A stretch of 62,848 bases of DNA, filler included, from Octopus bimaculoides (taxonomy: Eukaryota), in assembly GCF_001194135.2 (NCBI RefSeq). It is 4 parts of 4 records of this genome, joined end to end, with 100 filler letters (N's around TTAATTAATTAA, not from the genome) between each part and the next. Parts side by side here need not be neighbours in the genome. Positions count along the whole stretch, not along the records: positions 1 to 22,699 come from NC_068993.1; 3 more parts are not named here. One strand, written 5' to 3'. A program made the translations under genes and the position numbers. Below, piece after piece: positions 3,209 to 21,176 of the stretch; position 1 is the stretch's first letter, and every line of letters begins with the position of its first letter. The notes under the pieces were generated by a model. It searched no databases. It saw only the letters and a program-made list of their open reading frames with translations, and was not told the DNA's origin.

Positions 3209-3507
3209 TCCTCCTCTTCTTCACCCTCTTCATCTTCCTCCTCTTCATCTTCCTCCTCTTCATCTTCCTCCTCTTCATCTTCCTCCTCTTCATCTTCCTC
3301 CTCTTCATCTTCCTCCTCTTCATCTTCCTCCTCTTCNNNNNNNNNNNNNNNNNNNNNNNNNNNNNNNNNNNNNNNNNNNNNNNNNCCTCCTCTTCATCTT
3401 CCTCCTCTTCATCTTCCTCCTCTTCATCTTCCTCCTCTTCATCTTCCTCCTCTTCATCTTCCTCCTCTTCATCTTCCTCCTCTTCATCTTCCTCCTCTTC
3501 ATCTTCC
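3209..3507. repeat. 15-bp pyrimidine-rich minisatellite (CTTCCTCCTCTTCAT)n with an internal gap
   Basis: Direct inspection; lies in a myotubularin intron. Confidence 0.95.
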
Positions 3508-4407: not shown

Positions 4408-4596
4408 GTGATGTCATGGATCCACCCAGAGTCGCAGGCGACCATCACTCGTTCCAGCCAACCTTTGGTCGGAGTCACTGGCAAGAGGAATAAAGAAGAT
4501 GAACAATACATTCAGATGATTATGGATGCAAATGCCCAGTCGCACAAACTGTTCATCATGGATGCTCGACCCAGTGCAAATGCCATGGCCAACAAG
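4408..4596 (+). CDS. MTMR2: Myotubularin exon
   Basis: ttttcacAG / GTCAGT, 189 nt, [22 protein letters not shown]...[12 protein letters not shown]. Confidence 0.97.
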
Positions 4597-4853
4597 GTCA
4601 GTTACTCTCTTTACACATTCATGCTCGTTCTAGCCTTCTCTCTTTCTCTCTTCCTCTCTTTTAAATGAAATTCTGTGGTTTAGAAGGGTGTGTATATAGC
4701 AATAGATTGTTATCTTACAAGTATACAAATAAAAATAGGAAATAAAAGATAGGAAAAAAAATAAAGTAATATATTTTATTTTTTATATTAGTTTTTTGCC
4801 AGATGGCAAAGAAAACAGAAAGTAGTAATGCTGTCTTTTATGATATTTTTCAG

Positions 4854-4945
4854 GCTAAAGGAGGGGGGTATGAGAACGAGGATGCTTATCACAATGCTGA
4901 GCTGATTTTTTTTGATATTCCTAACATCCATGTGATGAGAGAGAG
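4854..4945 (+). CDS. MTMR2: Myotubularin exon
   Basis: tttttcAG / GTAAAT, 92 nt, phase 0/2, [30 protein letters not shown](S). Confidence 0.97.
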
Positions 4946-5286
4946 GTAAATATGACTTGTTTTTTTTTTACTTTTCATGCGTACACCTATATTCACACAT
5001 TATAACACATAGACACATAGGCAAACACACAGACAGACACACAAGCCCGATAATATACATATTTGCCCTCCTCCCACTTGCTCCAGGTCTTAATACTGTC
5101 TTCCAAACATCAACATGTTTCGGATATCTTGCATAATGACACATAATGGTTTTTTTTACTGTATACGAGTCAAAAAATCGGTCAGTTGACTTCTAAATAA
5201 ACCAAGACAATTTTGGAGGACCAAAAATTCTATGTGAACTACTGCAGGAAAGACAACAATAATGTTTGAATGTTTGCACATGTATC

Positions 5287-5475
5287 AGGACAATTACCCT
5301 TCTAGGACAATTCCCCCTGATGACAACTACCCCCTAGGACAATTATCCCCCTTGGTTAATTACTCCCTCTCCAATATATTAAAAAGTTTTAAATCATCAT
5401 CTGTTGTCCTCAGGGGTAATTGTCCTTGGGGTCGGGGTAGAGGTATTGTCCGTGGGGTGGTGGGGTAAATGTCCT
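5287..5475. mobile_element. Small foldback/MITE-like element of inverted GGACAATT(A/C)CCCC arrays
   Basis: About four direct copies at 5288-5350 and about four inverted copies at 5404-5475. Confidence 0.55.
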
Positions 5476-5689
5476 AGACTCATTTACACAACATATATAC
5501 TATATAATATGTTGGCTTATATGCCATAAAATATATTATACCACAATGTCCACAGTACTGTGTTCAACCATCAACATGTTACAATGGTCAGCTGCTTATG
5601 TCCAGTCATGACATACTCGTTATTGTAATGTCTACAAAACTGATTCCTTGATATGAAGATAAACATTCTGTTTCTCTTTCTTTTTTCAG

Positions 5690-5783
5690 TTTAAGAAAGT
5701 TAAAAGATGTGTGTTTCCCCAACATCAATGAAACTCACTGGTTGTCCAATATTGAGTCGACACGCTGGCTGGACCACATCAAG
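5690..5783 (+). CDS. MTMR2: Myotubularin exon
   Basis: ttttttcAG / GTGAGT, 94 nt, phase 2/0, (S)[31 protein letters not shown]. Confidence 0.96.
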
Positions 5784-6514
5784 GTGAGTGAACAAACAGA
5801 CTCCAAGTTCAAATTTCACCATATGTCATTGTAACAATGTTTTTTTTTTCTTTTGTAATCTCATGTGGAGGTTCATCATAAAAGAAAAAGTAAGATGTAA
5901 GATACAAAGTCAAGCAACTTTATGTGGTTCTCTCATGGACATGGTATCAAGTTTGATTACACCTGGCTAAAGTGGTGTATTGGCCGAGTCACTAAAGTGT
6001 TGGATCGATGACTTGTAGTATTTGTTCTGGATTGCTGTACTCTGAGTTCAATTCCTGCCCAAGTCAAATTTACCTTTCATCCTTTTGAAGGTCAATAAAA
6101 AACGGTACAAATCCAGGACAGTGGATTAAGGAAACTGTCTGAGAGTTGGGTGAGGTACCTTGTGGAATTTGTTCAGGGCCTTTGCATTCTGACAGCAACA
6201 CCTGAAATGACACAAGTGCAAAATGCTATCAGCCTCAGCCAGTGGCATGAAGTGTAGAAACTTACCTGCATAGACCAACTGCTGGTCTTTCTAGAAGTCC
6301 TACATGTTAATTTGATTGAAAAATAAAAAAAGAATTCATATCAATTATCTATAGAGATTGTTGTGCAGCCCTCTGGCTTGTCACTCATCAGTCAAACCCT
6401 CTGACCCATGCCAGCATGGAAAGCGAATGTGAAACGATAATGATGATGATGATGATGATGATTGTTATTCAAATGATCAAATTCCTGTTATTATTTTTTT
6501 CTTCTTGATTACAG

Positions 6515-6613
6515 CAAATCTTAGCTGGTGCTGTTCGTATTGCTGACAAAGTGGAATATTACAAGACTTCTGTATTAGTTCATTGCAGCGATGGTTGGGA
6601 CCGAACTGCTCAG
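6515..6613 (+). CDS. MTMR2: Myotubularin catalytic exon (CX5R P-loop)
   Basis: ttgattacAG / GTAATT, 99 nt, [33 protein letters not shown]; HCSDGWDRT is the signature of active myotubularins. Confidence 0.98.
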
Positions 6614-6794
6614 GTAATTTATAAATAATTATTTATGAATTTATATTTTCAGTTGGTTGTTGTTGTTGTTGTTTTAGCCTAGTCCAGCCCTGACCAAGCA
6701 GACTTATAATCAAAGGTGTTGTTCCCATTACACGCTTGTTCATTTTTGTGATTTTCAGGAATACTATAAGACTACATTATCCAATGTTTTCTTT

Positions 6795-7110
6795 CAGTGA
6801 AGGTGTGTTGCTTCGTGGTCAGGGTATTAGGATCACGGTTTTAAGGTTATGTGTTCAATTCCTGGCAGTGTGTTGTGTCCTTGAGTGAGACACTTTATTT
6901 CATGTCGCTCCAGTTCACACAACTTGCAGAAATGAGTAGTGCTTATATTTCAAAGGGCCAACCTTGTAACATTGTGTGTCACTGAGAACTACATTAAAGG
7001 TACATGTGTCTGTGGAGCGCTCAGCCACTTGTAGGTTAATTTCTTGAGGAGTCTGTTCCATTGATCGGATCAACTGGAAACCTCATCATCCTAACCAATG
7101 GCATGCCAGT
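6795..7110 (+). mobile_element. tRNA-headed SINE, family with GTGTCCTTGAGCAAGACACTT-type core
   Basis: A/B-box-like head plus core. The 3' half is shared with a minus copy at about 36640-37015; another copy is at about 58675-58910. Confidence 0.65.
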
Positions 7111-7381
7111 TAATGCTTTCTTCCTTTTTTTTTCTCTAAGAGAGGAAGATATCATTTAAAAGAGATTTGGTTCTTATGTTTAGCTGATCAAGAAATTAAT
7201 AGAGGTACCTAATGTTGATGTTGATGTTGGGGAGCCCCAATCTTTGACTTGACCTATAGTAGAGATAACCAGTCAAAGCGAGTCCTAGAACTGTGCAAGA
7301 GACAATCATGTTATTTATTTGATTCTTACCATAATATTTCTAATTGTTTGATATTCATGAGATTTTCAATTTAATCCACAG

Positions 7382-7489
7382 CTCACCTCTCTTGCAATGA
7401 TCATGCTGGATCCATATTATCGAACTGTGAAGGGGTTTGAAATCCTAATAGAAAAAGAGTGGCTCAGTTTTGGACATAAGTTCGCTCAA
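7382..7489 (+). CDS. MTMR2: Myotubularin exon
   Basis: aatccacAG / GTAAGT, 108 nt, [36 protein letters not shown]. Confidence 0.97.
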
Positions 7490-8044
7490 GTAAGTAAAGT
7501 GGAGAAAAGATGTTTGATGACATATCAAAATTAACTTTTTTGTTTTCAATTACCAGAAAATATTATTACTGAGGACAACGGTAACTTGAAGTTTGCAGGG
7601 AATTTTAAAATTGAGTCAAATAGTGAAATATTACTCAGACACGTAGATATTTCTATGAAGAAAGTGTCAAGTACTTTGAAGAAAATCAGAGCAAAATCTC
7701 GAACATTTATGAAGCTGTTTCATTGTATTTAGGTCTCAATTCTTACAACTTCCTCGTCAAGTTCAGATTTATATTTGTGTTATTTTATATCAGTCTTGAT
7801 AGTGAACACCTAGTTAAATGGATCTTATCTTCAAACCCATATATCTTGGATTACATTATCAATGTGTTCTTTTCTTTTAACTCAAAAAATTTGGAGCAGT
7901 TTTAGCTGCTATTTCTTGTATGCTGAAAATCACCATTTATGCGTCCTTATTGCATCCCTCTTTAAGCGCTATATAATTGTAGTTGCCTGCGTATAACTTA
8001 AAACAGGTTCATACATAAAATTATAATTGGGTGTTCTAGTTTAA

Positions 8045-8254
8045 CCCTTTAGCACTTAATCCGGCCTAAATATTCAGTCTATTTTATGTTAAAATAGACC
8101 ATATCCAACTTCTCACACCTACCCTACAATGTCATTCTAAAAATAAACAATCACATCATCAAAACCTCAAAGACATAAGATAGTCCCCGATTAATTCCAA
8201 ACAATGTGAATAAATAAGGATTACATTGGACAGAGTAACCTGAATGCAAAAGGG
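8045..8254. mobile_element. piggyBac-like MITE (210 bp)
   Basis: TTAA on both sides (8041-8044, 8255-8258) and CCCTTT(A/T)GCA terminal inverted repeats. A partial copy is at 10273-10388 and an interrupted copy at 55857-56240. Confidence 0.75.
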
Positions 8255-8419
8255 TTAAATATGGCCGATTAGGGAATGGCTTGATTTGTATTATAGAAGC
8301 AGATGTGGTCTCAGATATGTTGTTGTGAAACAATTTAGTCATGTTTAAGATTGAGTTAAAGTTTTAATCAAATACACATCGTTATAGGCTGAAATTCCAA
8401 TTTTCAATTTTTCTTGCAG

Positions 8420-8512
8420 AGAATCGGGCATGGTGAAGACAAACACTCAGATGCGGACCGTTCTCCTGTATTTTTGCAGTTTATTGACTGTGTGTGGCAA
8501 ATGGCCAATCAG
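8420..8512 (+). CDS. MTMR2: Myotubularin exon
   Basis: ttttcttgcAG / GTAATT, 93 nt, [31 protein letters not shown]. Confidence 0.97.
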
Positions 8513-9079
8513 GTAATTAATCTTAAAATCTGGACAATGGACACGAATTAAAATAAGAACAGTAATAAATGAGTGAAGAACGAATATACGGTGCATGTGT
8601 TTATTTGGCAAAAAAAAAAAAAAAATTACCATCCTGAAGTATAACAAAGTCTTAAAATCACTGTTCTTTAATTAATGATATGATGCAAAGAACATTAGAG
8701 TGAAATGGTTATAGATAATCACCTTCACTAATTTGGTTTGTGGGTGATTTGATCATCATATTGTGATTAAAGGGATGATAAAATACTGTACAGATTACAA
8801 GGTTAAATGTATTGAGACTTAAGAGAACTGATTAAAACTGATGTCCTGGGGTTGACTCCTTGTTGCCTTTTTAGTTCTGTGGCAGCAGCAACAGATGATT
8901 ATTTCCTGCTAGCAATATAAACACGAGTGCTTATATGCACCACAAGTCCACTTTAGAGGTTCTCTTATGTTAAATAATGCAGTATTCTGTGTTCCAACTC
9001 AACATCCACTTTTAAGTGGGGATAAAAATTACCTTTTGTATTTAATTGTTATTTTAAATACAAAAAACACATAAAAAGC

Positions 9080-9395
9080 ACCGTTCGAGCATTGCGCCTC
9101 ATGGAGACAGTGACAGGTGACCAAGACCTTTGGTGATACACTGTACATGTGTTGACCTGTCAAGCCAAGTGAGATTGTAATCGTGGCATGTAAAAAGCAC
9201 CAATTACACTCTCAGAGTGGTTGGCATTAGGAAGGGCATCCAGCTGTAGAAACCTTGCCAGATCAAATTGGAACCCAGTGCAGTCCCCCACCCCAGCTTA
9301 CCAGTTTTCAGCCAAACCATCCAACCCATGCTAGCATGGGAACCAGATGTTAAACAACGACGACGACGACGATGATGATGATGATGATGATGATG
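9080..9395 (+). mobile_element. RTE-type 3'-end element (short LINE remnant or RTE-tailed SINE) with (GAT)n tail
   Basis: Recurrent motif gagtggttggcattaggaagggcatccagctgtagaaac...caacccatgccagcatgg...gttaaacgatgatgat. Further copies at about 1510-1612, 6370-6462, 14560-14915, 15750-15900, 22370-22435, 22800-23003, 23440-23760, 24900-25100, 25450-25640, 30440-30605, 55955-56146, 60160-60611 and 61245-61383. Confidence 0.8.
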
Positions 9396-9431
9396 ATTGC
9401 CATTAATACTTCTCTTTTTGTTTGATTTCAG

Positions 9432-9545
9432 TTTCCAATTGCTTTTGAATTCAACGAATACTTTTTGATTACCATCATGGACCATCTGTATTCATGCCTC
9501 TTTGGAACATTCTTGTACAATTCTGAACAACAACGAGTTAAAGAG
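9432..9545 (+). CDS. MTMR2: Myotubularin exon (SID region)
   Basis: tttgatttcAG / GTACAA, 114 nt, [38 protein letters not shown]. Confidence 0.97.
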
Positions 9546-10010
9546 GTACAATATTCAGTTATTATTTCTCCTTGACCTCCCCCACCCTCCAACCTATTTC
9601 TGCTGCTTTCTCATTTTCTTTGTTACTCTCTCATCCCAAACTCCCAGACTTTCGTATCATTCACCTCTCTGCTGTCGCTCTGTCTGCTTTTTATTACGAT
9701 GCCTCTGTTAGAAGTGATGGAAAACCATTCAATCTGTCTGTATTCCATTACTGTTTCTTTATTGCTAGCTATCACTCTTTCTCTCTCTCTCTCTCTCTTC
9801 CTTTCTCTCTCTCCTTTCTCTCTCTCCTTTCTTTCCCTCTGCCTCTATTTCATTNNNNNNNNNNNNNNNNNNNNNNNTCTCTGATTGTTCTCTCTTACTG
9901 ACAGTTTCTGTGGAAATATTCAAAGAACACAAATTTATAGAATTCCATATTTACACTCTCTCCTCACTCGCTGATTCCTTCTAATTTTCTTTTTCTATTA
10001 TTGTATTAAG

Positions 10011-10190
10011 GAACTGAAGACAAAAACCCATTCCCTGTGGGGTTACATCAACAGCAGCGTAGAGGATTATCTTAATCCTCTCTATGCCACTTACCTAGAC
10101 CAACATGTCTTACTACCAGTTGCCAGTATGAGGCAGTTAGAACTTTGGATTGGATATTACTGCCGATGGAACCCATGCCTAAGGCCACAG
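10011..10190 (+). CDS. MTMR2: Myotubularin exon
   Basis: ttgtattaAG / GTACTT, 180 nt, [25 protein letters not shown]...[18 protein letters not shown]. Confidence 0.96.
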
Positions 10191-10394
10191 GTACTTGCTT
10201 TGTTGTTCTTAATATTCTTGTAGTTCTTTTGTAAATTTGTTTACCATATTTTTTTTTGGTGGGGGTATTTAACCCTTTCGCATTTAAACCAACCATGTCT
10301 GGCTCAAATATTCTCTGTTTTATGTTCAAACTGACCAGATCTGGCCTCTCACACCTATCCTACAATGTAATTCTAAAGATAAACAATGAGCTGC

Positions 10395-10718
10395 AGGTGT
10401 GGCTGTGTGGTAAGAAGTTTGCTTCCCAACCACATGGCTCTGGCTTCAGTCACACTGCATGGCACCTTGGGCAAGTGTCTTCAGCTATAGCCTCGAGCTG
10501 ACTGAAGCTTGTGAGTGGATTTGGCAAACGGAAACTGAAAGAAACTTGTCATGTATACATGTGTGTGAGTGTGTGTGTTTGTTAGTTCCCCACCACCACT
10601 TGACAACCGGTGCTGGTGTGTTTATGTCCCTGTAACTTAGTGGCTCGGCAGAAGAGGCCAATAAAATAAGAACCAAACTTAAACAGAAAAAAATGTACTG
10701 AGGTTGATTTATTCAACT
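10395..10718 (+). mobile_element. tRNA-derived composite SINE (GGCTGTGTGGTAAGAAGCTTGCTTCCCAACC family)
   Basis: A/B boxes, central GCACCTTGGGCAAGTGTCTT, internal microsatellite and a second module. Further copies at about 24290-24510, 26085-26240, 43425-43527, 48184-48410, 50905-51270, 51470-51690, 51925-52050, 53325-53480, 53680-53825, 56540-56850 and 59570-59790. Confidence 0.8.
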
Positions 10719-10975
10719 ATCAGTCTCTTTTTGCTGAACCACTAGGTCATAGGGTTGTAAACAAACCAACACCAGTTGTCAGGTGGTAGTGTGGATACAC
10801 ATAATACACACACACACACACACAACACACAATTGGCTTCTTTCAGTTTCCGTCTACCAAATCCACTCATGAGCCTTTGGTCAGCCAGAGGCTATAATAG
10901 AAGACACTTGCTCAAGGTGCCACACAGTGAGACTGAACCTGGAACCATTTGGTTGGGAAGCAAGCTTCTTACCAT
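10719..10975 (-). mobile_element. Inverted copy of the same SINE family
   Basis: Reverse complement aligns with 10405-10662. Confidence 0.8.
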
Positions 10976-11040
10976 ATGGCCAGTTGTGAAAATTATTATT
11001 TTTTTAATCTTTTTCTTTTCCCCCCCCATTTCTCTTTTAG

Positions 11041-11238
11041 GAACCAATCCACCTCCGGAATAATGTGTTGCTGAAGCTGAAGAACCATTTGCAGAAGGAG
11101 TATGAAAGTCTGATGAAAGAACAAGAAAGCAGGAATGCCCGTGGCACAAGCAGTAGCAGCAGCAGCCAGGCTGTGAATTCTACAGCTTCAATGTCTTCAA
11201 GTTCAGCTCAGAGGGTAGCGTCTCCCGTTAGCACCTGA
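11041..11238 (+). CDS. MTMR2: Myotubularin terminal coding exon (coiled coil plus Ser-rich tail)
   Basis: tttctcttttAG acceptor, 198 nt to TGA, EPIHLRNNVLLKLKNHLQKEYESLMKEQESRNARGTSSSSSSQ...RVASPVST*. Confidence 0.93.
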   Translation, partial: EPIHLRNNVLLKLKNHLQKEYESLMKEQESRNARGTSSSSSSQAVNSTASMSSSSAQRVASPVST

Positions 11239-11291
11239 GATTGTCAAAACAGTCTCAAGAAACGATTTTTGAAGAATATAGAAAATGCAAA

Positions 11292-11447
11292 AATAAAACA
11301 AAAAATTATGTGTATTGAGGTATAAAAAAATATTAAAAAAATAAACAATGTGAGCATGCTTGTGTATATGCTTGTATGAGTGGTGATTGTGTGTGTGTAT
11401 AGATAAATGTGTGTGTGTGTGTGTGTGTGAATGAATAAATAAATAAA
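11292..11447 (+). terminator. Cluster of candidate proximal poly(A) signals of the myotubularin gene
   Basis: AATAAA at 11292, 11340, 11434, 11438 and 11442; a distal candidate lies at 13998-14003. Usage cannot be determined from DNA. Confidence 0.35.
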
Positions 11448-11479
11448 TGTATGTATTTTTACCCAATTTTATGTGTAAA

Positions 11480-11578
11480 CATACATTGTTACATACTCAT
11501 ACATGAAGCATAAACACTCATATATGTATATGTGTATACATATGTATGTATGCATGTATATGTATATATGTATATTTG

Positions 11579-11625
<47 letters not shown>

Positions 11626-11645
11626 GTATATATAAATAAAAATGT

Positions 11646-11679
<34 letters not shown>

Positions 11680-12046
11680 ACATGTGTGTGTATATATATG
11701 TGAGTGTATATGTATGTGTGTATATATGTGTATATATATTCATGTATGTGTGTGTATATATATGTATGTGTGTGCATATGTATGTGCGTGTGTGTGTATA
11801 TATGTATGTATATATTTGTATGTATATATATATATGTATGTATATATATATGCATATATATATATATGTATGTATGTTTGCATGTATGTATGCATGTATG
11901 TCTGTATATATGTATGTATGTATATATTTGTATGTATATATATATATATATATGTGTATGTATATGCATATATATATGTATGTATGTTTGCATGTATGTA
12001 TGCATGTATGTATATATATATGTATGTATGTATATATTTATGCATA

Positions 12047-12088
<42 letters not shown>

Positions 12089-12590
12089 GTATATGTATGT
12101 ATACATTTATGTGTGTATGTATATATGTATGTATACATATATGTGTGTATGTATATATGTATGTATACATATATGTATGTACATATATATGTGTGCATGT
12201 ATATATGTGTATGTATGTATATATATATATACATATATATATATATAGTGTTTATGTATATATATATGTATATGTATGTATATATGTAGGTGATTATATG
12301 TATATGTATGTATATATATATAATATATGTATATATATTTATGTATGAACTCCACTCCTGTATGTTTGAAGATCTATTTTGTAAATATTTAAAAAAACAA
12401 AAGCCTTAACAAATAACAATGAAAAGCTGCAAAAAAAAAAAAAAATCAACATCACTTTCTTATTTGCGCTATATATATTAATCCCATACACATACGCACA
12501 TAAACATTTATAGGTCACGCATATACAGACACACACATGTAAATCTATCTGTTTGTCTGTCTGTCTGTCTGTATGTATGTATACACACAT
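11480..12590. repeat. About 1.1-kb compound (TA)n/(TG)n/(TATG)n microsatellite tract
   Basis: Direct inspection; source of the many YI/CV/HT-repeat ORFs. Confidence 0.97.
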
Positions 12591-13094
12591 ATATAATTCA
12601 CTTAATAGCTGGAAATGGCCTTTGTTATGAGATTACAAAACCATAATATGAGTCAGTATTCTTGTCTTTTATAATATAATATTTGTATTTTATTTATTCT
12701 TTTTTGTTTTCTCTAAAAAATTCCTCAATTAAGAATTCTGCCTTTTTTTTTTTTTTTTTTTACTCTGGAATACCCAGCAAGTATGTGGTTTTACCAGTAT
12801 GCATGTGGAATAAATGTCTGTTGATACTTCAAGTGCATCTTGCTTACTCTTCTCCTTCATACGCCATGGCCTGTTAAGGACTCTCTTTCTTTCTCGTAAC
12901 CCACACCAGAACACAGAGGCAAAGCGAATAAAAATTTTAAACTGCACACAACATGAAATCTTTCAAACACTGCACTGATGCACTTGGAACTCTCTGTGAG
13001 AGGTTGTGCTTGCTATGTGCCCTGACTGAGCAGGTAGAGCTAAGGTTCATCATGTAGATTATCATTATCTTAAGTTTGCCTTCATTTATTTAAG

Positions 13095-13139
<45 letters not shown>

Positions 13140-14094
13140 ATTTTTGCATGCATATGAATACATACAAAGTTGAAGACTTGGTAGTATCTTATATACACAT
13201 GTAGAAGAGATGTGTGTGTGTGTGTGTGTGTGTATTCAAGTGCAATGGATGCCATGTAGCAACTGGGATTTCACTGATGGCATTCAATTTCTTTGTAATG
13301 TACGAAATACACACACATGCATGCATACAAATATACCTTCACACATACACACACAGACATTACATGCACACGCTTGTGTTTGAAGTGTTTAGTGTGAGAT
13401 TGGTATGTACATCTATGCATCTCTGAGTATATTCACACGCATACACACATGAACATAGACATATTTTTACATATGCACACACACACACACACACACATTA
13501 CCATCAAATATACATTCACTATATGTATGTATGTGTGTGTGTGTAATGTTTGAAAGAGAGAGAGAAACTAGCTGTTTGTGTGCAAATGAATCTTATCATA
13601 TCTCTCAACTATTATTTTAATTAAAAGCAGTGGATATTTCGAATAAGAACCATGGAGATTAAATGCATTCTGGAATTCATTTCCATTTCTCATGGTTCCA
13701 CATTCAAATTCCATCCAGATGGGGTTGATAGAATAATTAACCCTAAATGCTTAATTGGAATCAATCTAATTTTAACTATTCTTTCATCCCACCAAATACT
13801 TATTGTTCAATAATTACTCTTTTAATTACCATTACAAAAAAAAAAAACCCAAAAAGCAAACAAAGACCCCAAAATTCAGTGCTTCATTTTTTTTTTTAAA
13901 TAATTTTATACAGCATTTTGTGTGCAAGCTTTTGTGTCAACAATAAATATATTTTATCTTAAATTTTACATGTTTAACCTTATTTATTGTAAACAAAAAT
14001 AAATCTATTAGAGATTTAGAAAACATGTTTTTTGAGTTGACACTGTGAACATCTTCATGCGTTTGTGTCACAAGATGAATCTAAGAGGAATAAA

Positions 14095-14520
14095 CATGAG
14101 AGATGCTTTGCCTGTGTGTGAACAGCCATGCTACATGGCAGTAAAACATGGGCTGTGACTGCTGAGGACATACTTAGGCTTGAAAGAAATGAAGCTAGTA
14201 TACTTTGCTGGATGTGCAATGTTGGTGTGCATGTATGATATAAAGTTTTAGCTCTTGAGAGAAAAGTTGGGCAAAAGAGGCATCAAATGTGGTGTGCAAG
14301 AGAGACGACTCCACTGGTACGGTCATGTGATGCATATGGACAAGGACAGCTGTGTAAAGAAGTGCTGAGCTCTAATTGTGGAGGGAACGTGTGGAAGAGA
14401 CAGACCCAGGAAGATGAGGTGGTAAAGCATGGTCTTCAAATGTTGGACCTCACAGAGGTGATAACAAATGGCTGAGACCATTGGTGATATGCTGTGCTTG
14501 AGAAGACCCAGCAAGCCAAC
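14095..14520 (+). mobile_element. RTE-clade LINE, decayed ORF C-terminus
   Basis: Reads ...TAMLHGSKTWAV...LERNEAS...QERRLHWYGHVMHMDKDSCVKKC with stops and frameshifts; same family as 30700-32005. Confidence 0.8.
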
Positions 14521-16508
14521 ACTGCTAATGTCATGTAAATGGCATCCATGAAAACATAATTATGGCCATTGGTGGTAGCATGATCGTTTGAGCATTGGGC
14601 CCCATGGAGGTGATGACAAGTGACTGAGACCTTTGGTGATGTTCTGCTGAGAAGACTTGTCAAACCAGGTGAAATTGCAGTGATAGTCATGACTGTTGCC
14701 AGTGTCACTGTAAATGGCACCCTGCTGGTGTCGTGTAAATAGCACCCGTAAAATCATAGTCATATGGCACCTGTGCTGGTGGCACGTAAAAGCACTCATT
14801 ACAGTCTTGGAGTGGTTGGCTTTAGAAAGAGGTCTGGTGCAACTCCCTGGTTTACCAGTCTCAGTCAAACCGTCCAACACACACCAGCATCCAAAGTGGG
14901 TGTTAAATGATGATTTACCTTGAGCCCCCAAGGCTTTAAGGTTGAGCTTCCATGTCTGGGATTTCCTCTCTAATTCCACTTGAGATTCAGCTACAAGAGA
15001 ACTAGATTGTCCATAACCAATCTTAACTATTCTGAGTTAGTCTGTAGAACTGAGGAAGGGGGCTGAGGACTGAGCCTTGACCATCTACCTTCTCACTGAA
15101 TTTGACACTGAAATCATTTTTTGATACTCATTGCATCTTTGTACATAGCTTTTGATATCTCCCATCTCTCACAGGCCATTTAGTCTTCATCTATGGACTG
15201 CCTTATATTTTATGTTCCTACCTCTCAGCCTCCCTGCAACCATTTCATCTCACTTTCATCTCCTATACTGAACTTTCAACTCACCTTTTCCCCTGTATTC
15301 CTCCTCGTTTTGTCCAAGGCAGCCCTATCCCCATAACCCTTATGTATCTCTTGACTTTGTCCCTGGACTGTGCATCTCTTGCATCCCACCCCCACCTCCT
15401 TAACCCACTCCTATTTCCTCCACCTTTCCCTCCGACCAATATGCACAATTGACCATATCTCCAGTGTTTCCCACTCACTGCATTCCCCTCTATCCCACCT
15501 CTCTTCATCTTCCACTCCTTTCACACTTACCTCTCTAATCCTCTCTATCACTCATATTCACTTCCCCATTAACTTCCTGATACATGTTTTCCAGCAGGGG
15601 TGACCATGTATCTTCACAGTGAGGCCCCCATTTCCCTGTATTTCTCTTACCATTTTCTAACCTCTCATCACCTGGCATAAAACCACCTCCATTAATTCTG
15701 CAGCCCTTCAGTTGTGAGTTACTGCTATTAGTGCCATGGAAAAAGCACCAAGTACACTCTGTAAAATTGTTGCCATTAGGAAGGACATCCAGTTGTAGAA
15801 ACCATGCCAAGCAAGACGTTGGAGCTTGGTGCAATCCTCTGGCTTTGCTATTTCCTCTTAAACATAAAACCCATGTCAGCATAAAAAAATGGACATTAAA
15901 TGGTGTGGTTAACAACATATATCCATCCATCCGTCCATCTTTTCTGTCCATTATTCCCGGGAGAGTTGTGGGGGTAGGGTCCTTAGGCATCTCCTCCATA
16001 GGGTCTAAGAGCTAACCATCATTAAACTTTCCAGCTGGATTTCCAAGCATGACCAGCTGAGACTATTTCCAATCATGTAGTTCTGATCTACCCCTAAATC
16101 TCCTGCTAATAGTTTCAGCTTGAATCTCTCTCCTCAGTGACATTCTACTCATGTCCGTAGCATTAGAACTGTGACCTCTCAAAGCAAAGAAGTAGCTGCT
16201 TAACCTCCAGATTAGTTATGTGCCCCCTTTGACTAATATTCCAGAGACCACATGGAAGGGCCCCATTTCAGTCAGGGTCCCATTTCAGTCATATCCATCC
16301 AGCCAACCAACCAAAATTAACATTGAAGGAAAATCGCTTTACTACCATTTCTCAAGTGAAGAGCTCGAATTCTTTTAATGCTTCTTGGAGGTAACTGGTT
16401 GCTGGGATTGTTATTCGTGTTGAAAGTTAAGTACATGACTGTTTCAGGTTTTTCATTTATCTTGAAAGCTGAGCTGTTTCATATAATTTATCCTGCATTA
16501 CTCTAGGC

Positions 16509-16650
16509 CAGCGGTTCTCAACCAGGGTCCATCTGGCCCTTGGAAGTCCATATAAAATTTTAGAATTTATTTCCAATAAATTGGCTGTACTTCAATACAC
16601 AGAACATTTTTATACAATCCCAAATAGTATTTAATTATTTAAAAAAAACT
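16509..16650 (+). mobile_element. hAT/Charlie-like terminal fragment
   Basis: CAGCGGTTCTCAACC terminus preceded by CTCTAGGC (hAT-Charlie-like target); no partner end found. Confidence 0.5.
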
Positions 16651-17168
16651 ATTTTTTTAATGTGATTTGTCACGTTGCATCTGTGTATTCTGGCAGCATC
16701 AGAACAGTCCACCATATTGGCATTTTTCTTGGTGATTCTTCATTCTTGGTTATCACTAGTGTTTCTTGATTTTTATTTCTGAAACAACTATTTTCATTTA
16801 CATTATACACCCGCTCAGGACTTCTTTTGTATCTTCTGAACATTTCTCACCATACACCGACATAGTGAGCTGCAGCTAACCCTCGCTATAAACACTAAAT
16901 TTTGTCCTTATTCTTTAACAAAATTTTTGGGCCCTTTCTTTCATTAGATCTCCAGACGGTATCACCTTCACTTTATATGCAAAAACTAAACCACTTCAGG
17001 ACATGATCAACTTATTTTTGTCATTGTTTTTGCTTCATTAAAAATACTGTAAGCAAACAATTTTTTCTATTGGAAAGTCATCATTGCTGTATGAATCCCT
17101 TTATTACAGACACACTGCTGTCAAGTTCAATTTCTACCTTTAAAAGGACAATGCCTGGTGTCTGCATT

Positions 17169-17174
17169 TTTATT
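17169..17174 (-). terminator. Candidate poly(A) signal of the His/Cys-rich gene
   Basis: First AATAAA on the minus strand, about 285 nt after the stop codon. Confidence 0.4.
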
Positions 17175-17459
17175 CTTTCACACCAAGGCTGGAACTTTAG
17201 CACATGTTTATAATAAGGAACACCACCGAAAACAAACCCAATTTGGAATGCCTTCGCTGTGTTTAGATTGATGGATTACTGATGGACAAGTTAAGAGAGG
17301 ATTATCTAGGAATTAAAAGAGAAGCAACAAAACGACCAAGAAAAAATAACAGAAAATTGGATTGTGTGTTTTTTTTTTATATCTGTATATTTGTCAATAA
17401 CGAAAAGGGAGTCGAAATTTAGACGGCTGTTCTTCACCAATTCACTGTTCATCTTTACT

Positions 17460-17615
17460 CTACGAACCTTTTTTCGTCACAGTAATAGTGGCCGCTGGGT
17501 TTGGACAATGGTGATCACAACAACCATGACAATTTGCAGCATGACAATTTGAGCAAGGATTGCAGGGGCACGAATGACATACTGGTGTCACGTGGATATG
17601 AGGTTCTGGTGGATT
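17460..17615 (-). CDS. His/Cys-rich repeat protein, terminal coding exon (51 aa + TAG)
   Basis: TACTAAT branch point (17645-17651) and a very long poly-Y tract ending ctcAG. Encodes NPPEPHIHVTPVCHSCPCNPCSNCHAANCHGCCDHHCPNPAATITVTKKGS*, the same Cys/His/Pro bias as exon 1. Confidence 0.82.
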   Translation of the reverse strand, partial: NPPEPHIHVTPVCHSCPCNPCSNCHAANCHGCCDHHCPNPAATITVTKKGS

Positions 17616-17935
17616 CTGAGAAAAAAAAAAAGAAAAAAAAAAGAATTAGTAAATGGTCTTATTAATGAATAGTTTGCGCAACAAAATTTCGTCATTAAAT
17701 AGAACTTTAAAATCAAGGGGAATAACTCTCAGGCAAGGGAGAGAACCCATAAGTATTACGTCACTAATTTTTTTTTTAAATGTGTTTTCTAAGTCGTTAA
17801 GAGCATATAAATTATACCAAAGTAATTCAGTGTCACGTTTAATGTACACTACACAGCTTCAACAGCAAATTTGTTATTCAGATGTATTTTTGATGGGGAA
17901 AAATAGAAATATATAAATTGTGAAACAATAGTTAC

Positions 17936-17973
17936 CTGAGTCACAGTAATTTTCGTTCGTTTTCTTTTTGGAG
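17936..17973 (-). CDS. His/Cys-rich repeat protein, coding exon 2 (38-nt micro-exon, (A)PKRKRTKITVTQ)
   Basis: ttattattattttgcAG acceptor and CAG|GTAACT donor. 38 nt is exactly the length class (3n+2) that joins the phase-1 donor at 20124 to the phase-0 acceptor at 17616. Confidence 0.8.
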
Positions 17974-18046
17974 CTGCAAAATAATAATAAGAATAAATAT
18001 AATACCCAGCAAAATAAGCTGGAAGTTTTCATATACTACTACTACG

Positions 18047-18079
<33 letters not shown>

Positions 18080-18081
18080 GC

Positions 18082-18104
<23 letters not shown>

Positions 18105-18112
<8 letters not shown>

Positions 18113-18545
18113 CCTTTCTACTATAGGCACAATGCCAGCAATTTCAGGGGAGGGAATAAGTCGAGATTTGGAATCAGGATGTAAATAACTGAAATAAATA
18201 CAAGACTTTTTTGATACCCTACCAATTGTGCCAATCCACAATGATAATGCTTTCTGATTAAGGCACAAGGCCAGCATTCAAATCAGCCCCAGCACCTAAC
18301 CAATACTTTTATTTACCCAACAGGGCGCAAAGCAGCCTATTCTTTTCTACTCTCGGCACAAGACTTGAAATGTTTGCGGGGTGGAGGCCAGTCAATTAGA
18401 TCGACCCCAGTACGTAACTGATACTTAATTTATTGACCCCCCCGAAAGGATGAAAGGCAAAGTCGACCTCCGCAGAATTTGAACTCAAAACGCAAAGATA
18501 AGACAAAATACCACTAAGCATTTCGCTTGCGCTCGCCACCTTTGC
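18105..18545 (-). mobile_element. Two SINE copies of the GAGTTCAAATTCCGCCGAGGTCGACTTTGCCTTTCATCC family in the 2.15-kb intron of the His/Cys gene
   Basis: Match to family copies at 37250-37510, 38110-38650, 39840-40600, 48540-49010 and 54960-55630. Confidence 0.7.
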
Positions 18546-20124
18546 AAAGCAGCTTATTGTATGCTGTTGTCCCTAGTATTTGACTGGTACTTTACTTGAT
18601 CAACCCTGGAGATATGAACGAGGCTGGTCAAATGCTGCAAGAGGTCTGCCAATGTTCTATTGCAAGAGCATCAGAACCATTAACTGTCCTGAACTGTCAA
18701 GGGGAATCACACCCCCACTAAGTATGAGAAAAGGATCCAAAACCTTACAAAAGGTTATTGAATATAGAAAATGTGTAAGGTTTAAGAATAATTATCCTTT
18801 CTAGTATCTTTAACCCTTGCGACACACAGGTGTTTTGGTATATGGATCCAAAAAGACCAAAATGTTTTCCAGTTGTGATTTAAATTGATAGGGGCATGTA
18901 GAAAACAAAGGATAAAGTGCCTAAAATTACTTCATTATAAAAACTTCTAAACAGTACAATACTTCTATCACAATAAGAAAACCTAAAACACAATATATGT
19001 AAATAAAAGTATCTTTGTGAAAAAAAAACAAAAAAACAAGCAAAATATCTACTGAGAGACGATCTCTGATTGGCTCTTACACTTCAAAACCAACCATTCA
19101 CAACATTTATTCCATCGGCCTGATCAATTGGCCCAGTTATACCAATAGCGTCTAATGGAGGGAGATGGTCTAGGAAAAGGCCAAAGTGATGGTCTAGGAA
19201 GAGGCTAAAGTGAGGGACCCTGTTATGAAAAAACAATTCAATAAATTAGCTAAAATGCAGTTTGTACATGTGCCAGGTTGGGGTACTACTCATGCTTTCC
19301 AGAATAAGCACTGTCTGGTGGTTGGAGACCTGATGCAAGGTGGCATGATGGAATTGTACTGTAGAGAACCACTAAAACGAAAGGGACAGACTTGAAAGAG
19401 AAATTCGATGTCCAATATAATTAGGAAAGTGGAAAGTCAAAAGTAAAGAGCTTTGCCAAGGTTTTCAAGCATGAGGTATCCCTGGCTGGGGAGGAGTGTA
19501 TGAAATGGAATAATAACTGTATGCTTCTCTCTTAATGATGCCAAAAATACAAATGTATGTGCTATAATGAGGATACTGATCAAGGAGAATAATGCACAGT
19601 GATGGAGGTGGTGGTGGGTCTACTCAAGACAACAAAGGTAAAGAAGGCAGCTGGACTTTCAAGAATGAGCTTTGTGTGTGTGTAAAAGCCACATGTAGTG
19701 TTGCCACATGTAGTGTTGAGGGTTATGTGCCACCAGTGGAGGTGAGAAGTCAAGCATGAGGTACCAGAAGTTAAGGTGGTGGAAGTGACAACACAGTGAT
19801 GCAGGTCTTTCAATCAGCCTCTTTCTTGGATGAGCAGTTTAATTCCTAAAATATGTTGGAACTTGTGGCCCTCTTCCATTATTTTCACCACCGAACTACA
19901 TGAGAAATTTTGTAAACAAATACAAATGAATTTAGAAGTGCAGAAAAGTAATGCATGCATACATACATACAACTGCTCACATATATCGCAAATAGAACGT
20001 ATTATATATAAATCAAACCCCCACCCCCCACCACCACCAGGTCGCAAATATCACAAGTTGAACATATATTAACATATATTAACATTTATTATATATATAT
20101 ATATATATATATATAGTGACTCAC

Positions 20125-20848
20125 CTGGCACTGTTTGAATGGCAAGTTGTGGAGCATTCGGGCAGTGGCATAGTTTCACTGTGGTTGGCTCACACTGTTC
20201 TAAATCAGATGTTGATGCGTCATTCATATCGACTGTGACATTCTCTGGGCATGGGCATGGACAAGGTCCGCAAGGCCCACAAGGTCCGCAGGGCCCACAA
20301 GGCCCGCAGGGTCCGCAGGGTCCGCAGGGTCCGCAGGGTCCGCAGGGTCCGCAAGGTCCGCAAGGCGAGCACTCCTTGGGCGCTACTTCAATTGAGTAAG
20401 TTTCACATGGTTTCGGTATCAGTTGTGATAACATGGTGGCCACCTTTGTTTGTTCCGCTGCTACCACAGCCTGTTGAGTCGCAACTACAGCCTGCTTGGC
20501 AGCTACTTTCGCTTGGTGTTTGGCTATCATAAACTTACAAGGCAGTTTGTGTATGCAGACACAATGGCTGTGACAATGACCATGACCGTGGCAGTGACCA
20601 TGACTGAGACAGTGACCATGACTCAGGCAGTGACCATGAAAATGACAGTGACCATGGCCGTGGCAGTGACCGTGTCCGTGGCAGTGACCATGTCCGTGGT
20701 GGCAATGACCATGTCCGTGGTGGCAATGACCATGTCCGTGGCAGTGACCATAACCGTGACAGTGGCCATGATGTCCATGACAGTGATGATGGCATGGCTT
20801 ATGGGTGTGCATAATAATAGAATCACATGTTACAGAATCACAACTCAT
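20125..20848 (-). CDS. His/Cys-rich repeat protein, coding exon 1 (241 codons + 1 nt)
   Basis: 724-nt open frame. In-frame TGA five codons upstream of the ATG. Upstream branch point ACTAAC (20955-20960), long poly-Y tract and CAGCAG acceptor (exon start 20915 or 20912). Donor CAG|GTGAGT at 20124, phase 1. Repeat units vary at synonymous positions. Confidence 0.85.
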
Positions 20849-21097
20849 GTTTCTGCTAGTTCATGCAAAACGTCAAAATAGATAGTAATTTTCTTCTGCA
20901 AGTTGACACAATCTGCTGGTAAAAAAAAAACAAAAACAAAAATAAAGGAAAAATGTTAGTGTACATACATTGTATACATGCATGTATATATGTATGCATG
21001 TATGCATACACACATAGGTTTATGCAAACCAATCACAAAAATAAATTTCTTTTATATACATCCAAAAAATTCCATATGTGAATGTGTGTGTCTGTGC

Positions 21098-21176
<79 letters not shown>

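Follow-up and report, generated by a model that had tools for sequence, protein, structure and literature searches.

A spliced orphan gene of Octopus bimaculoides encoding a His/Cys-repeat protein, a possible component of sperm accessory fibres

Gene structure and transcripts at the locus

The window, i.e. the whole stretch of 62,848 nucleotides (filler included) of Octopus bimaculoides DNA that was analysed, holds on its minus strand a gene for a His- and Cys-rich protein, called here the His/Cys gene, with an MTMR2-like gene as neighbour (Table 1). This His/Cys locus is a genuine spliced protein-coding gene. The preliminary description, made from the sequence by itself, had joined three segments into one 918-nt CDS with matching phases and canonical donors; recomputation returned the same model, that is 305 codons followed by TAG, intron phases of 1 then 0, the donors GTGAGT and GTAACT, and acceptors of the coding introns ending in ...TTATTATTATTTTGCAG and ...TTTTTTTTTTTCTCAG. 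The in-frame stop reported five codons 5' of the ATG is indeed present, as a TGA within the same exon. Regarding the mapping of RNA onto the predicted junctions, which had been put forward as a check, both were found in RNA contigs of three species labels (organisms A, B and C), the 17973/20125 junction being present in contigs of X1, X4, X6, X8, X10 and X12, and single RNA contigs span all three coding exons.

While the three coding segments stand, the designation of a three-exon gene does not hold for the transcript as a whole, which also has a minor cassette exon and, beyond the window, a non-coding 5' exon. All mRNA contigs of X1, X2, X4, X6 and X27 match the window to position 20915 and then share one further 5' sequence; one contig carries at least 292 nt of this non-coding exon, and its 30-nt start was sought in the window and not found there. 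Since one or more non-coding 5' exons, lying beyond the window, come before the first coding exon, the gene comprises at least four exons. The part of the 5' UTR lying on the first coding exon includes a two-codon uORF (ATG AAC TAG, 20864-20856). As for the cassette, its two joints in X4 (17973/19765 at a contig depth of 1632 and 19895/20125 at 1490) compare with a depth of 25327 for the main junction; on translation, including the cassette causes a frameshift, the product then being 244 aa long, ending in ...QTVPVRW and a stop codon, and devoid of the basic motif and of the C-terminal Cys/His cluster described below. At the other end, AGTAAA directly follows the stop codon and, in X4, a sequencing adaptor adjoins position 17407; the mRNA ends at about 17391-17407. 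The 2151-nt intron contains microsatellites and a multi-copy expressed repeat, and scanning the locus against Rfam and for tRNAs gave only sub-threshold mir-297-type matches on TG/CA repeats.

Table 1. Features of the His/Cys gene and of its predicted product, in positions of the window
Feature	Position	Strand	Basis or remark
5' UTR part of first coding exon	20849..20915	-	acceptor ...ttttaccag/CAGATTG at 20915
Coding part of first coding exon	20125..20848	-	aa 1-241 plus one base, then donor GTGAGT
First intron between coding exons, 2151 nt, GT..AG	17974..20124	-	RNA contig joint skipping 2151
Minor cassette exon, 131 nt, canonical AG/GT sites	19765..19895	-	contig joints in X4, contig in X18
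38-nt coding exon, encodes (P)APKRKRTKITVTQ	17936..17973	-	both flanking junctions in RNA contigs
Intron, 320 nt, GTAACT ... CTCAG	17616..17935	-	joint skipping 320 in X1, X4, X6, X8, X10, X12
Last coding segment, aa 255-305 and TAG	17460..17615	-	sequence read
Short 3' UTR	17391..17459	-	contig ends at 17391-17417
His/Cys/Gly repeat, aa 18-97	20558..20797	-	about 12 C-H-G-H-G-H-type units; 18-nt repeat x10.5 at 20577-20771
Helix, aa 104-141, five Ala/Val/Gln heptads	20426..20539	-	AlphaFold2 single-sequence model
(CGP)11 then CPCPCP, aa 161-199	20252..20368	-	9-nt repeat x10.9 at 20265-20362
Second Cys/His cluster CHSCPCNPCSNCHAANCHGCCDHHC, aa 267-291	17505-17579	-	sequence parsing
ITVTQNPPEPHIHVTPV			peptide of the predicted 305-aa product

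Modules of the predicted protein and search for relatives

The 305-aa product (32 kDa) is made up for one-third of His and Cys, with 50 His (16%), 46 Cys (15%), 33 Pro, 32 Gly and no Trp; the counts given beforehand for His, Cys and Trp proved exact. Five modules follow one another, namely about 12 CHGHGH units, a five-heptad helix, (CGP)11, an acidic linker then KRKR, and a second Cys/His cluster, an order already proposed and borne out by repeat parsing, as well as by an AlphaFold2 single-sequence model for the helix. With 38 His, 14 Cys and 19 Gly in 80 residues, the first module is a putative multivalent ligand array for Zn, Cu or Ni. The helix is the only confident element of the model (pLDDT 70-83 against a mean of 42.6), in which no folded domain was seen, and it would likely serve for oligomerisation, the protein being otherwise largely disordered. 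The 11 CGP units run in uninterrupted tandem from aa 163 to 195, and the KRKR-type basic motif (PKRKRTK), for which a separate 38-nt exon codes, resembles a classical nuclear localisation signal. Kyte-Doolittle hydropathy agrees with the earlier claim that a signal peptide is missing: no hydrophobic N-terminal stretch was found, the top 15-residue mean (1.0) being internal, at residues 94-116, and the predicted protein is accordingly taken to be without any signal-peptide-like segment.

Against 5.8 billion proteins, the whole protein gave only low-complexity matches covering 4-33% of the query, on which ground the collagen-like and the His-rich bacterial or metagenomic sequences among them were ruled out as homologues. 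The 177 non-repetitive residues had no match in the same 5.8 billion proteins by word-indexed search nor in 1.84 billion representatives by exhaustive phmmer, both sets holding few cephalopod proteins, and exact look-up retrieved neither the 305-aa product nor the 259-aa read-through ORF from the protein collection. In Pfam-A, hmmscan at E<=10 returned nothing but a Collagen triple-helix repeat on the CGP array, which was rejected, as it scored 16.5 bits against a cut-off of 27.2 over 31 residues only. In the PDB, only collagen-like peptides were matched, on the low-complexity CGP stretch, and full-text literature searches on the CGP repeat and on proteins of octopus sperm or testis yielded no description of the His/Cys protein. 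By comparison, the best match of the MTMR2-like neighbour was P0065 (UniRef, O. bimaculoides), and one octopus protein stood among the best 120 of its 677 matches. The view that the architecture belongs to no described family was thus upheld in these searches, while its restriction to a lineage agrees with the missing matches only within databases very poor in cephalopod proteins; because the collections appear to hold almost none, missing homologues do not establish absence in other cephalopods. At the level of sequence comparison, the gene is an orphan with no detectable homologue, orthologues having been seen in two very close relatives only, at about 1.4% coding divergence.

Conservation and expression between close species

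Compared with the CDS of organism B, the window shows 12 synonymous changes, one non-synonymous change and one in-frame indel of 18 nt, the coding divergence being about 1.4% in the MTMR2-like neighbour as well as in the His/Cys gene. Twelve of the 13 substitutions fall at third codon positions of the predicted frame (binomial probability about 2e-5), the indel is a deletion at 20304 found in all contigs of organisms B and C, which makes the CGP array two units shorter, and the splice sites and whole exon structure are kept between species. The frame is thereby conserved, as the check proposed at the outset called for. The synonymous excess and the in-frame indel, together with a dN/dS of about 0.02 over the CDS for two close species, therefore indicate that the CDS is translated and constrained; judged from these substitutions, the gene is under strong purifying selection.

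Expression was read from contig k-mer depth, a poor measure of expression, and by this yardstick X4, from a 2015 study, reached 100,000-270,000, i.e. about 2,000-4,000 times the MTMR2-like gene. In other runs of that study, depth was 0 in X29 and X30, 3-8 in X27 and X28 and 0-9 in X5, and X19 held none of the sampled words of the His/Cys gene; X4 exceeds six other runs of its study more than 10,000-fold on this same scale (0-9 there). The mRNA of the MTMR2-like neighbour, to which this comparison was normalised, was constant, with depths of 63 in X4, 65 in X27 and 58 in X1. For the organism B orthologue, depth was 12,790 in X6, where MTMR stood at 7.2, and X7 gave 7,700-20,000 in its main contigs, the strongest signal of this organism being in 2018 runs. 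Seven further libraries (X1, X2, X3 and X15-18) express the gene at low depth (10-43) and in spliced form, for X3 by k-mer share only. In short, the His/Cys mRNA ranks with the most abundant ones of a few libraries, the others being nearly free of it. The organism B RNA studies are small libraries dated 2018, 2019, 2021 and 2022, and MiSeq studies of O. maya cover testis (2018), white body and oviducal gland with stored sperm (PMC6341066, PMC6522055, PMC8976471); at a guess, the pattern of the former resembles that of the latter, a circumstantial pointer to testis.

That such an abundant transcript would merely carry an untranslated or functionless repeat-rich ORF, as a young low-complexity gene or as transcriptional noise, is very hard to credit. 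The failure to find homologues and the simple tandem repeats occupying more than half of the ORF would suit it, but the synonymous bias in frame, the phase of the sole indel, the splice sites and exon structure kept between species and the extreme mRNA level all speak against it.

A candidate sperm accessory-fibre protein and its alternatives

With a confidence a little under even, we propose that the His/Cys gene encodes a structural protein that is expressed in spermatids, belongs to keratin-like accessory structures in the tail or neck of octopus sperm and is hardened by Zn and disulfides. This reading is based on the CGP repeats, the Cys/Pro richness, the lack of a signal peptide, the heptad helix and the huge, library-restricted mRNA. 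Candidate sites are the outer dense fibres, the fibrous sheath or the connecting piece. There, the heptad helix would drive self-association while the His/Cys array would bind Zn2+, hold thiols reduced and bridge chains during assembly, and disulfides between molecules, formed later by the cysteines of the CGP array and of the C-terminus, would stiffen the fibre. The scheme parallels the Zn-then-disulfide maturation of mammalian outer dense fibres, where Zn2+ bound to the thiols in the course of spermatogenesis shields them up to the oxidation by which the fibres stiffen (PMC7589359). Octopus sperm possess a fibrous sheath as well as nine outer dense fibres of very high electron density (PMC11753710).

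Among the closest likenesses are those to sperm-tail proteins of fly and mammal. In Drosophila, the Mst(3)CGP genes encode tandem Cys-Gly-Pro and are male-germline specific, and normal assembly of axoneme and sperm tail depends on them (PMC10645079). Their products (Mst84Da-d, Mst87F) share with the octopus protein the tandem CGP, the lack of a signal peptide and a very abundant, restricted mRNA, whereas the latter is much larger and adds the CHGHGH array, the heptad helix, the basic motif and the second Cys/His cluster; no model of Mst(3)CGP or of another sperm-protein family was matched in Pfam-A (hmmscan, E<=10). ODF1 (HSPB10) carries C-X-P/CGP-type repeats. Rich in Cys and Pro and disulfide-forming, it is the main protein of outer dense fibres (PMC8471410). 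While the octopus protein is likewise rich in Cys and Pro, its CGP array is central instead of C-terminal, its His content is 16%, and it has no Pfam-A match to the alpha-crystallin/HSP20 domain of the latter. The likeness to Mst(3)CGP and ODF1 is one of repeat motif and not of homology; a three-residue repeat can arise convergently.

Two observations go against the sperm-tail proposal. Low expression in seven further libraries is left unexplained by strictly testicular expression, and the KRKR motif would be more expected in a nuclear than in a flagellar protein. The motif opens an alternative, to which we give a low probability, in which a spermatid nuclear or perinuclear protein imported via PKRKRTK would help, by Zn bridges and disulfides, in the compaction or encasement of the sperm nucleus, very elongated in octopus, in the manner of the Zn-binding His/Cys of mammalian protamine 2 or of perinuclear-theca proteins. 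A classical-looking basic motif on an exon of its own, its loss in the minor cassette isoform and the high His/Cys content are consistent with such a protein, and the expression pattern fits it as it does a sperm-fibre protein. However, the nuclear localisation signal is a pattern match only, and with 2 Arg, 15 Lys and a calculated pI of 7.8 over 305 aa this is not a DNA-condensing basic protein; on the same figures, a protamine-type sperm nuclear basic protein was rejected.

Dense metal ligands also invite comparison with metallothioneins and Helicobacter Hpn, which have in common with the octopus protein numerous Cys and/or His, a cytoplasmic location and a largely unstructured chain. Metallothioneins are small (<10 kDa), Cys-dominated and poor in His and aromatic residues, Hpn is bacterial, and the digestive gland of cephalopods is a site of Cu, Zn and Cd accumulation. 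An intracellular protein that buffers or stores Zn, Cu or Cd in a somatic tissue rich in metals, for instance this gland, and is a high-capacity metallothionein- or Hpn-like sink and not a structural protein, is as improbable in our view as the nuclear protein. It would account for the ligand density of the His/Cys/Gly repeat and the second Cys/His cluster, for the missing signal-peptide-like segment and for an mRNA both very abundant and library-restricted. Against it, no metallothionein or other metal-protein family was matched in Pfam-A, the length of 305 aa and the His content are unlike those of metallothioneins, the regular hexapeptide units set it apart from both families, and a soluble buffer would have no obvious use for the heptad helix and 11-unit CGP array, which are typical of cross-linked fibrous proteins.

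A further comparison is with Nvjp-1 of the Nereis jaw and the His-rich proteins of squid beak, which have Gly/His-rich low-complexity repeats. The octopus protein has such repeats as well, which could be metal cross-linked, but differs by its 15% Cys, its CGP repeats and the lack of a signal-peptide-like segment, those being secreted matrix proteins; no sequence similarity to them was found in the protein-collection searches. The composition resembles both His/Gly-rich hardening proteins and Cys-rich keratin-associated proteins, and one library dominates expression, so that a somatic structural or hardening protein could be envisaged, forming a keratin-associated-protein-like intracellular matrix in beak-, radula-, sucker lining- or skin-forming cells. 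The known His-rich hardening proteins of cephalopods and annelids are secreted, whereas here the 305-aa protein has no signal-peptide-like segment, and no intracellular keratin-like hard tissue is known in octopus. Besides, several small libraries of organism B, independent of one another, all show high expression, which a commonly sampled organ such as gonad explains more easily. This somatic role appears less probable still than metal storage.

Returning to the sperm accessory fibres, octopods may have built outer dense fibres or fibrous sheath independently of vertebrates and insects, from a taxon-restricted protein combining a His/Cys-Zn array, like that of extracellular jaw and beak materials, with a CGP disulfide array, like that of fly and mammalian sperm tails, a short coiled coil organising the chains. 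We regard this as possible but rather doubtful; if true, the protein would be a convergent and genetically tractable 'intracellular biomaterial'.

Outer dense fibres are found in cephalopods, mammals and insects with internal fertilisation. Should the His/Cys protein be the main matrix protein of the octopus accessory fibres, a structure that evolved convergently would become accessible at the molecular level, and one could test directly whether the 'zinc first, disulfide later' scheme of maturation is general; the CHGHGH array is of interest for metal-coordination biomaterials. Should it be a somatic metal-storage protein instead, it would bear on the known accumulation of metals by cephalopods. 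The gene itself, very abundantly transcribed, conserved and missing from the protein collections searched, belongs in octopus gene sets and would make a strong tissue marker.

Gene model and transcript structure

Reading of the minus strand over 17300-21100 gave a 918-nt ORF for the His/Cys gene, i.e. 305 aa followed by a TAG stop, with intron phases of 1 and then 0, donors GTGAGT and GTAACT, and pyrimidine-rich AG acceptors. The splice joins, phases, donors and acceptors of the preliminary description were thereby reproduced on joining the segments, and its hand counts of 50 His and 46 Cys with no Trp proved exact on recount. The two junctions, 17615|17936 and 17973|20125, are both found as minus-strand GT..AG joints in public RNA contigs, namely from runs X1 and X4 of organism A (spliced contigs also occurring in X15-18) and X6, X8, X10 and X12 of organisms B and C, these letters being coded species labels; all three coding exons are crossed by single contigs. 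The RNA check proposed earlier for these junctions thus came out in favour of the gene in all three organisms.

The description as a three-exon gene stands for the coding part but has to be extended by at least one non-coding 5' exon. The genome match of every mRNA contig ends at 20915, directly after ...ttttaccag, beyond which the contigs of organisms A and B extend for 141-292 nt into one identical sequence. Since this shared extension was searched for in the window and not found there, the promoter lies beyond 22699, as does a non-coding 5' exon or more than one. The in-frame TGA reported five codons 5' of the ATG is present, and because it lies on the same exon as the ATG, the N-terminus of the protein holds despite the additional exon. 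Contigs terminate at 17391-17417, which gives a short 3' UTR. Besides, the junctions of a minor cassette exon reach ~6% of the depth of the main one in X4; its inclusion shifts the frame and ends the product at residue 244, so that the C-terminal Cys/His cluster is lost along with the basic motif. Such inclusion could be regulated or splicing noise.

Regarding the 5' UTR, it carries a two-codon uORF (ATG AAC TAG), out of frame and 8 nt before the main ATG. Sub-threshold matches to mir-297 and mir-3149 on both strands (30-34 bits vs. gathering scores of 90-100) were judged a low-complexity artefact of a repeat rich in TG/CA that lies shortly before the first coding exon.

Features of the window, with the evidence for each
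Feature	Positions	Strand	Evidence
MTM1/MTMR2-type myotubularin phosphatase gene	4408-11235	+	RNA contigs, ORF inspection, protein match
MTMR exons, RNA-confirmed	4408-4594, 4852-4943, 5688-5781, 6513-6610, 7379-7489, 8420-8512	+	Spliced RNA contigs
MTMR further exons	~9426-9572, 10076-10231, 11041-11235	+	ORF inspection only
MTMR intron repeats	6340-6480, 6760-7180, 8020-8300		RNA k-mer depth
His/Cys gene CDS	20848-20125, 17973-17936, 17615-17460	-	ORF reading, RNA contigs
Minor cassette exon, 131 nt	19765-19895	-	Canonical sites; RNA contigs in X4, also X18
His/Cys gene intron repeat	18034-18130, 18380-18590		RNA k-mer depth
18-nt unit x10.5, His/Cys array	20577-20771		Tandem Repeats Finder
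9-nt unit x10.9, (CGP)11	20265-20362		Tandem Repeats Finder
CGP array	20252-20368		
uORF	20856-20864	-	
mir-297/mir-3149 matches, rejected	20959-21030	both	Sub-threshold scores
TA/CA-type low-complexity tract, >1 kb	11200-12600		
Assembly gaps (N runs)	938-1451, 2179-2188, 3337-3385, 9855-9877		

The MTMR2-like gene converges tail to tail with the His/Cys gene; its best match is an Octopus bimaculoides UniRef entry (P0065; E 3e-212), which identifies the window as this species or one very closely related to it. Long ORFs in all frames of the low-complexity tract, giving Y/I/H/T- and C/V/Y/M-rich "proteins", were rejected as artefacts. The MTMR introns hold multi-copy expressed repeats (depth 1,000-10,000 vs. 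~60 on exons), with many loose ends sharing a consensus near 8103-8111. In each run from the three organisms, the His/Cys gene intron repeat has an RNA k-mer depth of 1e4-2e5, along with numerous contig variants, loose ends and rearranged joints; it looks like a further multi-copy transcribed interspersed repeat, beside (TAC)n/(TAA)n microsatellites, and matched no tRNA or Rfam family.

Coding constraint and expression

Between the window CDS and the orthologous mRNA of organisms B and C there are 13 differences, 12 of them synonymous changes at third positions and the other T222A (binomial P of at least 12 of 13 changes on third positions, ~2e-5). Over ~197 synonymous and ~718 non-synonymous sites, dS is ~0.061 and dN ~0.0014, so that dN/dS, whose computation had been suggested earlier, is ~0.02 between these close species. 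The sole indel, an in-frame 18-nt deletion at 20304, removes two CGP units, leaving 9 in organisms B and C vs. 11 in the window; the repeat number thus evolves while the frame is kept. Since the MTMR2-like neighbour has diverged to the same overall extent (7 differences over 509 bases of exon), the low dN reflects constraint and not simply recency. The His/Cys gene is therefore conserved in two very close relatives, and this substitution pattern contradicts an untranslated or functionless transcript, which is highly improbable.

Expression was followed as contig k-mer depth, a crude measure applied to very large contrasts, in libraries known by run code and not by tissue. Within the 2015 study of organism A, depth over the coding exon is 100,000-270,000 in X4, compared with 3-5 in X27, 3-8 in X28 (fragments only), 0-9 in X5 and 0 in X29 and X30, and none of the sampled words is present in X19. 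Relative to the neighbouring MTMR2-like mRNA, taken as internal reference (depth 63 in X4, 65 in X27, 58 in X1 and 7.2 in X6), the gene is up ~2,000-4,000-fold in X4 and ~1,800-fold in X6 but stands at 0.06-fold in X27 and 0.2-fold in X1. Depths in organism B are 12,790 (X6), 7,700-20,000 (X7, main contigs) and ~5,000 (X9), with lower values of 382 (X11), 330 (X10), 192 (X13) and 14.5 (X12), and 130 was recorded in organism C (X8); the raw reads of the 2026 run X20 contained none. The His/Cys mRNA is among the most abundant of one tissue and near-silent elsewhere.

Protein architecture and relatives

Split at each Cys, the N-terminal array comprises ~12 units, mostly CHGHGH, and its 80 residues include 38 His and 14 Cys. 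AlphaFold2 run without alignment predicts a disordered chain (mean pLDDT 42.6), in which the only confident element is a helix at 104-141 made of five near-perfect heptads (35 residues). A cytoplasmic metal buffer in a metal-accumulating somatic organ would leave this helix and the CGP array unexplained and is unlikely. The basic motif PKRKRTK, encoded on its own exon, would suit a spermatid nuclear or perinuclear protein, but the protein is not basic, and this reading is judged equally unlikely. No hydrophobic segment resembling a signal peptide or membrane span was found in the 305 aa; the absence of a signal peptide, also stated in the preliminary description, speaks against a somatic hardening or matrix protein, a still less probable alternative.

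In Pfam, the only match was a sub-threshold one to Collagen on the CGP array, and in PDB only collagen-like peptides matched; full-protein matches were bacterial or metagenomic proteins similar in composition only, and were discarded. The 177 non-repetitive residues had no match in a word-indexed set of 5.8 billion proteins nor by exhaustive phmmer against 1.84 billion representatives, and the exact product was absent from the protein collection searched. As there is one cephalopod among the best 120 of 677 MTMR matches, these databases say little about other cephalopods. Judged from these searches, the gene is an orphan that fits none of the described families, in line with the preliminary description, which did not recognise its architecture as a described one. 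The protein lacks a match to the Mst(3)CGP family model and the HSP20 domain of ODF1, and likewise differs from metallothionein, secreted His-rich hardening proteins, collagen and protamines in their testable features. The searches returned no described protein in which one chain carries both a regular CHGHGH array and a CGP array, nor is one known to us. We class it with those structural or metal-binding proteins that are rich in Cys, built from repeats and cross-linked, and that taxon-restricted genes encode. Lineage-specific genes of low complexity and high Cys content are themselves common in gonads.

A candidate sperm accessory-fibre protein

Spermatids typically carry massive, tissue-restricted mRNAs for sperm-tail proteins of the kinds named below. 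Tandem CGP marks out the Mst(3)CGP genes of the Drosophila male germline, which are required for axoneme and sperm-tail integrity (PMC10645079), and ODF1, a Cys/Pro-rich, disulfide-forming protein, is the major protein of mammalian outer dense fibres (PMC8471410), where Zn2+ on the thiols blocks premature oxidation during spermatogenesis and its later loss permits disulfide stiffening (PMC7589359). In octopuses, the sperm carry nine outer fibres of very high electron density together with a fibrous sheath (PMC11753710).

The His/Cys ligand array, short heptad helix, CGP array and second Cys/His cluster would together make a self-associating, cross-linkable fibrous protein, with which the lack of a secretion signal fits, and whose closest parallels in the way it works would be sperm-tail proteins rich in CGP or Cys. 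In view of these modules, the CGP, ODF1 and Zn parallels, the octopus fibres and the massive restricted mRNA, the function ranked most likely, at slightly less than an even chance, is that of a sperm accessory-fibre protein held first by Zn-His/Cys coordination and afterwards by disulfide bonding; the structural or metal-handling role, possibly in sperm, put forward in the preliminary description is a plausible one by analogy.

Organism B, at ~1.4% coding divergence from the window, is represented by small-library RNA studies dated 2018, 2019, 2021 and 2022, the 2018 runs giving its strongest signal. O. maya, for which a close relationship to O. bimaculoides has been described, was the subject of MiSeq studies of testis (2018 accessions), white body, where sperm-flagellum transcripts were male-exclusive, and oviducal gland with stored sperm (PMC6341066, PMC6522055, PMC8976471). 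That the coded studies are these is a circumstantial guess, given little weight here. The gene itself is a striking, very abundant and constrained orphan with unusual chemistry.
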